A stretch of 64,000 bases of DNA from Utricularia gibba (Eukaryota > Plantae > Magnoliophyta), in NCBI GenBank assembly GCA_002189035.1, contig NEEC01000009.1:2294001-2358000 (forward strand). The letters run 5' to 3'. A program made the translations under genes and the position numbers. Below the pieces are notes generated by a model. It saw only the letters and a list, made by a program, of their open reading frames with translations, was not told the origin of the DNA and did no database searches. Below are positions 30,404 to 33,112 of this stretch, piece after piece. Numbering within the stretch: the first letter of the stretch is position 1; each line of letters begins with the position of its first letter.

Positions 30404-30610
30404 ATGGTGAAGCTTACTATGATTGCGAGCATTACGGATGCCCTAGCGCTAGTCGAGGGACTGTCTGATGGCCGTGATGTTCCTGATGCTGAATTTTATA
30501 AGCATCAAGCTAAGTCTTTGTTTAAGAGGCTGTCTGTGGGGCAGAATGAGCCATCAAGAATGTCGATCGAAACAGGACCTTGCATGTTTCAGTATTCTAA
30601 GGTACAGTAG
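30404..30610 (+). pseudogene. SEC22: SEC22-like R-SNARE fragment: first coding exon (half a longin domain) only
   Basis: MVKLTMIASITDALALVEGLSDGRDVPDAEFYKHQAKSLFKRLSVGQNEPSRMSIETGPCMF matches the plant SEC22 N-terminus. No downstream SEC22 exons were found before the Dof gene. Confidence 0.75.
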
Positions 30611-30969
30611 ATGGGTTTATTACATTGTGGATCACTCATATTATAAATGACGTTTATTACATTCCTTCCGATCCCCATCTTTGGCAGTTTGTATCATGAA
30701 TATTGAAGTGGATGAGAAGAACACTTAAGGAGCAAGGAAGCGGCAGCAGGCCTTGGAAGCCTTGGGAAAAGCTCAGACAGAGTGGGAACATATCAGTATC
30801 TCATTTGTGCATGTCTATAAATACAGAAAGCATAAAGCAGTCTCCCTTGCTTTATCTCTCTGGTTCCATATTCCCATCTCCACTTTTCTCTGCCCCTTCG
30901 ATTCTCCACTACAATCTCAAAGAACCATATGATCTTTTACAAAGCACAGAATTTCTTTGGATCCAAGCC

Positions 30970-32081
30970 ATGATTTTTTCTTCTCTGCCTGCTTATCTTG
31001 ATACTACATCAAATTGGAACCAGGTTAGGGTTTCTGCTTTTGCTTTCCTTTTTTTTTTGTGTGTGTGATCTTCCATGGCTAAAGCAGGACTTTCAAAAAG
31101 ATAAAGAAGATATTCCTTCTTTCTCTTTATCTTTTATCTGTTGTTGTTTTGATTTCTTGAGCTTCAGAGTCACCAGGTTATTGGAAGTAGCAGTGGAAAC
31201 AGCAGTTTGATCCCTTCTCTGCAAGCTTCCCAGCCACATGGCGGTGGTGGCGCGGCGGTTGTCCGGTCGGGATCTATGGTGGAGCGTGCCCGTCTCGCTA
31301 ATATTCCGATGCCCGAATCGGCTCTCCGGTGCCCTCGGTGCGACTCCACCAACACCAAGTTTTGCTACTTCAATAATTACAGCCTTTCTCAGCCTCGCCA
31401 CTTCTGCAAGTCTTGCCGAAGGTATTGTTGGAATATTTTCCAGGGAGTGTTCCAATAAAATAATCATAGTGTTCAAACAGGTATTGGACCAAGGGCGGCG
31501 CGTTGAGGAACGTGCCGGTAGGAGGCGGTTGTCGAAGAAACAAAAGAAGCAAGACAAACGCCTCCAGGGCTCAGACAAGAAGTGAACGCCCAAACACAGC
31601 CACCGCTTCCGGATCTCTTCCTGCTAACACCACCGGCGGTGGCGGCAACGGTGGCTTGACACCCCAACTGCCCCCTCTACGCTTTATCCCGCAACTATCG
31701 GAAAACTTCAACACCGCTCACGAAATGGTGGGAAGCGATCTGCTCAACGGTGGCTCACTGGCGCCACTCTTCTCATGCAGCGACGGTAGCCTCGAGCAGT
31801 GGCGGTTTCACCAAGCGCCGCAGCTCAGCTTCATGGATCCATCGCCGGAGTTCCAGCACGGCGAGCCGCCGTTTATCGTGGCCGATATGCTGCAGCCTAC
31901 CAAGCACTCCGAGCGATTCTTCCCTCAAGGCGAATCAGTGAAAACGGAAGAAAACCCTCAAGTGAATCCACCAAGGCAAGCGATGGGAGCAAAGCTACAT
32001 GGAAATGATCATGATTGGAGCAACGCACCCTCTTCATGGACTGAGTTTTGCTCACCCTCTACCACCACCAACCGCATGTAG
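30970..32081 (+). CDS. Dof zinc-finger transcription factor (DOF2.2/3.6/5.1-like); exons 30970-31023, 31168-31421, 31481-32081
   Basis: [62 protein letters not shown]|[22 protein letters not shown]. Continuity of the domain requires removing 31422-31480. Confidence 0.93.
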
Positions 32082-33112
32082 AAAAACCCTAATCATCTTT
32101 AGTCTGGAGACGTGAGAGTGTTCGGAGTTCAATTCTTGCGAGTGTCGTGTGTTTAGGGTTAGTTGGTATGACCGAAAAAACCCTAGTTGCCACTTCATCG
32201 TGTTGCTCTTGTTCTGAAAGTTGAGCTAGGGATGGCTTCTGGGGTGTAATTCCTTTCCATAATGGACGTCAATGGCGTTGCCTGTAGAAGCTCTTGAAAG
32301 TGCTTGTAACCTGCACATGCCATCGCCATTGATCGATCTTGGACATGGGTCTTGTGAAAGTGTTGGGATTCTCTAAGCAAATCGCGTTTGGGGCACTAAA
32401 CAGTTAGAAAGATGAATGGTGCTGTCTCACCCCTTTTTCAAACCCTACTGCAGTGGATCATTACACTTCTATTCCATCGCTAAGGACGCGGGTAACCTTT
32501 GAAAAAAGCAGTGGAGTAATTGGTCCTCTGTTGAGAATCAGGGCGCCTTCTAAAATAAAGCAGCCCATCAGAAAAAGGCACCCACCCATCCAGATCTATC
32601 TCAGTTTACCTTTACTCATATAAACTAGGGTTTCTTTCCTTGGTGTAATCAGGGGAGGAGGATACCGCATCGCTGAATGAGTGAGTAAATGGCCCTAATC
32701 ATTATCATGGAGATTTTCCTGTGAGTTTGCTGGACCCTCCAGGCTTCAGACACCCAATGGAAAAACATGGCGTCCACAGCTTTAAAGGACCACATGCCTA
32801 CCCCACCACAGTATCATTTCCCAATGAATAAAAGCAGTTTCGCTTGTCTGGAATGAAACACCAAATATCATTTCCATATTCAATTTTTCAGGATCCGTAC
32901 GGAAAATTTTTTGGTATAAGATCCACATCCAAACTTTCAAACAATTTCATGTTCAATATTAAATAAATGCCCAAAGCTCAAAAACTCCTTTTTTTTTGTT
33001 TTTGCTTTTTCTTTTTCTTTAGGGTTTGGGATAGACGCACAAGCAATGTTGAGTGTCAGAGATGTGTAGGCATGCATACATGTAACATGCATCTGGTTTG
33101 GGTCCAAAATGA

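Follow-up and report, generated by a model that had tools for sequence, protein, structure and literature searches.

The Dof gene in this window, a 64-kb (64,000-nt) stretch of Utricularia gibba DNA, raises the question of whether an intron has been newly inserted into an invariant DNA-binding domain, and by what route. An earlier note, made from the letters alone, described a 59-nt GT..AG interruption of the Dof domain at AG|G, together with an exact 8-mer at both ends. Both copies of the 8-mer, AGGTATTG, were found at 31420-31427 and 31479-31486, where they bracket a 51-nt insert. Here, we combined RNA and DNA contigs, orthologous loci, and statistical comparison of the insert with its surroundings. 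Our overall account is that of a lineage-gained U2-type intron in the Dof domain, most likely produced by repair of a staggered break with filler DNA, and we give it a probability of about 0.6. New introns that are well documented and still carry an intact footprint of the event are uncommon, above all in land plants, and the known plant gains are mostly tandem duplications or transposon insertions. For the present intron, we have the interrupted site as well as its intron-less counterpart in orthologues, and also the spliced RNA.

A Dof gene with a short intron inside the domain

The coding sequence consists of three exons with a total of 909 nt and specifies a 302-amino-acid protein. The features of the gene and of the interrupted site are as follows.

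30970 to 31023, plus strand: coding part of exon 1; RNA contigs join about 31023 to 31168
31024 to 31167, plus strand: intron 1, 144 nt, 67% A+T, ancient; placed by RNA contigs, at a position common to orthologues
31168 to 31421, plus strand: exon 2, with AG as its last bases, ending within the Dof domain after CKSCRR
31422 to 31480, plus strand: intron 2 (gained), 59 nt, GT..AG, phase 2, 68% A+T; placed by RNA joints
31481 to 32081, plus strand: coding part of exon 3, to the stop codon TAG; placed by RNA contigs
31420 to 31427, plus strand: left copy of AGGTATTG, source of the exon-end AG and of the 5' splice site GTATTG
31428 to 31478, plus strand: the 51-nt insert, single copy in the window, with no similarity to the flanks and no Rfam match
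31479 to 31486, plus strand: right copy of AGGTATTG, source of the 3' splice-site AG and of the exon start G TAT TG(G), which codes for R/Y/W
31425 to 31458, plus strand: RNA hairpin predicted by folding on the 5' side of intron 2, with a 15-bp stem, 5 G-U pairs, and a 4-nt loop

The 18-residue peptide encoded by exon 1 is the N-terminal motif MxFSSxPxYLD, typical of DOF2.4/DOF5.1-type proteins. In the spliced 302-residue protein, the Dof domain is complete (Pfam PF02701, E = 5.5e-34), and the best matches of the protein, from Lamiales and at no more than 49% identity, are named DOF2.4/DOF5.1. Judged by these matches, the gene is a DOF2.4/DOF5.1 (PEAR)-type Dof transcription factor. A second Dof gene was looked for in the 64-kb window, and none was found.

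Across the interrupted site, the window reads TGC AAG TCT TGC CGA AG|GTATTG TTGGAATATTTTCCAGGGAGTGTTCCAATAAAATAATCATAGTGTTCAAAC AG|G TAT TGG ACC AAG GGC GGC. Intron 2 splits the conserved residues CKSCRR|YWTKGG, and its removal rejoins HFCKSCRR to the Dof residues that follow. Retention of the 59 nt shifts the frame of the domain, as the earlier note had said it would, and leads to a stop codon at 31456-31458. The A+T content of intron 2 is close to that of the ancient intron 1 (68% and 67%), as against 44% in the exons. A candidate branch point, UAAU, was picked out by eye ~19 nt upstream of the 3' splice site.

Intron 2 is removed from RNA

We aligned Logan contigs from four RNA runs to positions 30600-32600. 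The RNA junction that the earlier note had proposed looking for is present in three of these runs (X1, X2, and X5, from two studies), in each of which a contig jumps from 31419 to 31479, leaving out 59 nt with GT..AG ends. The position of the joint is ambiguous over a stretch of exactly 8 letters. Introns 1 and 2 are both spliced in a 1159-nt X2 contig that spans them. Contig depth in the bin 31404-31470 was 10.6, 2.24, and 4.24, and each value equals the flanking depth multiplied by 16/67, the exon share of the bin. The depth of intron 2 is therefore zero, and the intron is absent from every contig.

The RNA contigs differ from the window at single bases, namely 31299 T>A in X1 and 31868 G>A and 32034 T>C in X6, which means that the RNA came from more than one genotype. 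Intron 2 is spliced out in every contig covering the site. One low-depth contig from X1 (3.8 versus 13-41) crosses intron 1 unspliced, at 30998-31194. This suggests partial retention of intron 1 rather than DNA contamination. In the assembled contigs, intron 2 is removed at least as completely as intron 1.

We also performed an index search with the 81 nt around intron 2 (31412-31492), which contain five intron-spanning words. All of these words (5/5, share 1.00) occur in four DNA runs that date from 2013 and come from the same organism; in the RNA runs listed under the species label, X1 and X4 among them, their share was 0.00. Since intron 2 is present in DNA and missing from RNA contigs, it is not an assembly artefact. 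The interval 31422-31480 is a real U2-type GT-AG spliceosomal intron.

Three further DNA runs under the same species label (X17-X19) contained 0/5 of the intron-spanning words; poorly assembled contigs, diverged sequence, or an allele that lacks the intron could be the reason. The same contigs give some information on the ends of the transcript. The 3' end lies near 32395, judging from a poly(A) tail on an X6 contig, and contig 5' ends fall near 30799-30907. In the 3' UTR, the G-run at 32240-32244 has one extra G in the contigs of all four RNA runs relative to the window; this looks like either a wrong homopolymer length in the assembly or a fixed difference between these runs and the sample that was sequenced.

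The orthologous site and the age of the intron

Next, we compared the site with orthologous loci. Genomic orthologues were taken from Paulownia fortunei (L001, L002), Sesamum alatum (L003), Handroanthus impetiginosus (L008), and Andrographis paniculata (L009), with further orthologous genomic loci from plant Logan contigs (L005-L007). In 8/8 of these genomic loci (L001-L003 and L005-L009), tblastn recovers the Dof domain as one block, and the domain is uninterrupted as well in L004, a contig that may be genomic or RNA. When the proteins of L001 and L003 were mapped back to their own loci, the sole intron fell after residue 17-18, which is the position of intron 1.

At the homologous codons, the loci L001, L002, L008, and L009 read AGA AGG TAT TGG AC and carry AGGTATTGGAC in a single copy; L003 and L005-L007 read AGG TAC TGG. 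The orthologue site in four other Lamiales families has a single AGGTATTG or AGGTACTG. With one 8-mer in an uninterrupted domain, the orthologue site is an empty one. Two points of the earlier note are borne out here: its reading of the structure as an 8-bp target duplication plus a 51-nt insert, and its expectation of an intron-less site in related species, which held in all eight genomic loci, those of the four other families included. Intronization of former coding sequence was rejected, as the orthologues have nothing between RR and YW. Taken together, the comparisons make it well supported that intron 2 is a lineage-specific gain, which arose when 51 nt were inserted at an AG|GT proto-splice site and 8 bp of the target were duplicated.

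Several protein searches were made for closer relatives. With the full-length protein, with exon 3, and with exon 2 read into the intron as queries, no relative above 49% identity was found, and the best match to exon 3 was at 40%. Two sets of candidates for an interrupted domain in other plants were examined and discarded. In Genlisea aurea, M569_02555 (L011; a 79-amino-acid partial protein with a 590-nt gene range) has a contiguous domain and belongs to another Dof subfamily. Three Logan proteins that start with MRNVPVGGG (P0135, P0139, and P0140) had looked like products of split Dof domains; their contigs are uninterrupted, and the gene caller had chosen an internal start.

An exact repeat across two splice sites can also arise by chance. 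A scan of the window for GT..AG intervals that have open frames on both sides and a repeat of at least 7 bp in register gave 5 matches. One of them is the 9-bp repeat ACCAGGTTA (31018-31026 and 31171-31179) beside the ancient intron 1. This sequence lies at the donor of intron 1, and a second time 9 nt downstream of the RNA-supported acceptor at 31167. If position 31176 served as the acceptor instead, the frame would be kept and three codons (SHQ) lost; no RNA contig uses this acceptor. Repeats of at least 5 bp have been found in 26% of conserved Drosophila introns (PMC3443670). By itself, the 8-bp repeat at intron 2 is within chance expectation for a window scan. What gives it meaning is the RNA junction, together with the intron-less site of the orthologues.

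The existence of such chance repeats is what would allow intron 2 to be an ancient intron of the Dof domain that survived here only and is flanked by a coincidental 8-bp repeat. We find this scarcely credible. An ancient intron is missing from all eight orthologous genomic loci, and also from L004 and from the other Dof gene of Genlisea aurea (L011), so that many parallel precise losses would be needed. In family surveys, introns of Dof genes are generally found upstream of the domain (PMC4850169). In addition, a new intron at AG|GTATTGG would start with GTATTG by chance in ~0.5-1% of cases, a figure that is a rough estimate of ours, drawn from the base composition of introns and the frequencies of plant 5' splice sites rather than from a computation; the match of ATTG would have to be put down to that chance.

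When the gain took place is a separate matter. The comparisons would place it after the split from Paulowniaceae, Pedaliaceae, Bignoniaceae, and Acanthaceae, and this is the sole bound on its age. The gain could be real and yet not recent, having happened once before the gene or genome duplications of the lineage, in which case other in-domain Dof introns would be paralogous copies. We rate this possibility somewhat below even. The recent date given by the earlier note has the intact repeat in its favour and nothing else. An intact 8-mer requires only that four weakly constrained bases (ATTG) stay unchanged, and it is therefore no proof of youth. Once the outer bases had decayed, splice consensus and the R-Y codons (AG|GTA) would still leave 5 bp of the repeat. 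This alternative concerns timing only and is compatible with either mechanism of insertion considered below.

Origin of the insert and comparison with known systems

The best current reading of how intron 2 arose is break repair with fill-in and captured filler, to which we would give somewhat better than even odds; both the mechanism and the origin of the insert are inferred. The ancestral exon read AGA/CGA AGG TAT TGG ACC, with an AG|GT proto-splice site within it. A staggered double-strand break at this site, with 8-nt overhangs that were then filled in, would have duplicated AGGTATTG, and end joining would have captured 51 nt of unrelated A+T-rich filler DNA. The left copy's GT became the 5' splice site, and the right copy's AG the 3' splice site. 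Because the duplication supplies both splice sites, splicing returns the ancestral reading frame exactly, and this exact restoration explains why an invariant DNA-binding domain tolerated the insertion. The duplicated AG|GT target made the insertion harmless at once. The double-strand-break-repair model of intron gain is reviewed in PMC3443670. Reverse splicing or intron transposition was rejected, as it would leave the target unduplicated.

The insert itself is 51 nt long, starts with TTGGAATA, and ends with GTTCAAAC. No extra copies of it were found within the 64-kb window. Compared on both strands with 120 nt of each flank or with the intron-less junction, it showed no significant similarity (p = 0.07-0.9 against shuffles), and an exon segment duplicated recently is ruled out by this. 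The look-alikes TTGGA, CCAGGG, AGTGTTC, and AATAAT, which it shares with the flanks, had suggested templated filler or a tandem duplication; all fail shuffle tests. A search of Rfam left the gene region without a family match, which argues that the region is not a known small-RNA host.

This lack of similarity bears on a tandem duplication of an AGGT-containing exon segment (the Rogers model) whose interior has since decayed. Such duplications are documented in plants, as in the potato RdRp gene (PMC4974935), and AGGT is indeed duplicated at both ends of intron 2. The 51 nt beyond the 8 bp, however, have no significant similarity to either flank, and a perfect 8/8 match beside 51 nt at random level is at odds with uniform decay. 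We regard a tandem duplication as very improbable.

Two internal features of the insert, both pointed out by the earlier note, were examined further. Its stem-loop holds up as RNA: the hairpin at 31425-31458 folds at -14 kcal/mol (z = -3.2), and only 1/200 shuffles is as stable. It does not hold up as a DNA palindrome, for which the self-reverse-complement score is not significant (p = 0.23). A mirtron was also considered and rejected, the 15-bp stem being too short in our judgement. The internal near-repeat, AGTGTTCCA at 31446-31454 and AGTGTTCAA at 31468-31476, does exist, and its significance is marginal (p = 0.045 for 9/10 matches; p = 0.12 for an exact 7-mer). The 9/10 repeat and the RNA hairpin are compatible with break repair as marginal features, and neither is decisive. 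At the two ends of the insert, an inverted match of 7/9 can be seen by eye; one of its positions belongs to the duplicated 8-mer, and the match is weak.

The alternative source of an 8-bp duplication is a transposon. The transposase of hAT-type elements also makes 8-bp duplications, and the insert could be a very short non-autonomous hAT-like element that acted in the manner of an Introner, its target duplication giving both splice sites. The duplication of AGGTATTG, which is exact and involves a sequence that is single-copy in orthologues, has the size of the target duplication of a hAT-type MITE, and in this the earlier note was right. The hairpin and the weakly inverted ends point the same way. 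Huff and colleagues, writing in 2016, reportedly described Introner-like elements in which a target-site duplication supplies the splice sites. The rest of the hAT or Introner-like reading put forward earlier found no support. With its 51 nt, the insert is much shorter than MITEs usually are, convincing terminal inverted repeats are lacking (p = 0.23 for a self-inverted repeat as DNA), and it is single-copy in 64 kb. Its termini are also unlike the hAT terminal consensus. Some Introner families do draw both splice sites from the insertion site, but a survey of 3,325 genomes found no Introners in land plants (PMC9860276). We therefore consider a transposon unlikely.

Intron 2 may be one of many short (~60-110 nt) lineage-specific introns with exact flanking repeats of 5-12 bp in this genome. 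We put this forward tentatively and think it possible but rather doubtful. If true, repair-driven intron gain like that of Daphnia would have been active in a land plant, and the Dof AG|GT at the CRR|YW codons would possibly be a recurrent target. If other repeat-flanked short introns hold up, the genome would be a plant system for the origin of new introns.

In general, intron 2 resembles the neointrons of Daphnia pulex, for which repair of staggered double-strand breaks has been proposed (Li et al. 2009; PMC4202315). In Daphnia neointrons, the end of the adjacent exon is repeated over 4-12 bp, and internal repeats are frequent (PMC4202315; PMC3443670); the 8-bp repeat described here falls within this range. 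In both, a short new intron lies in a conserved exon with the frame restored exactly, a direct repeat of the exon end is found at the intron's other end, and the insert has internal short repeats (of marginal significance here) and no known source. The differences are that the host here is an angiosperm and not a crustacean, and that a single locus is described, as opposed to a population survey. Like Introners (Gozashti et al. 2022, PMC9860276), intron 2 has an AG|GT target duplication that yields both splice sites and leaves the mRNA length unchanged; unlike them, its insert is only 51 nt long, without clear terminal inverted repeats, and present once in the 64-kb window. The Rogers-model intron of the potato RdRp gene (PMC4974935) is likewise a plant case in which a duplicated AGGT at the ends defines the splice sites, whereas in intron 2 the duplication is limited to 8 bp and the interior bears no relation to the exon. 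Finally, the insert is like the filler left by plant end joining, where tens of unrelated or patchwork bases are found at a repaired break (Gorbunova & Levy 1997, as cited in PMC3443670). As far as that citation describes them, those fillers are somatic products of transgene repair, and not germline introns like the one gained in this Dof domain.
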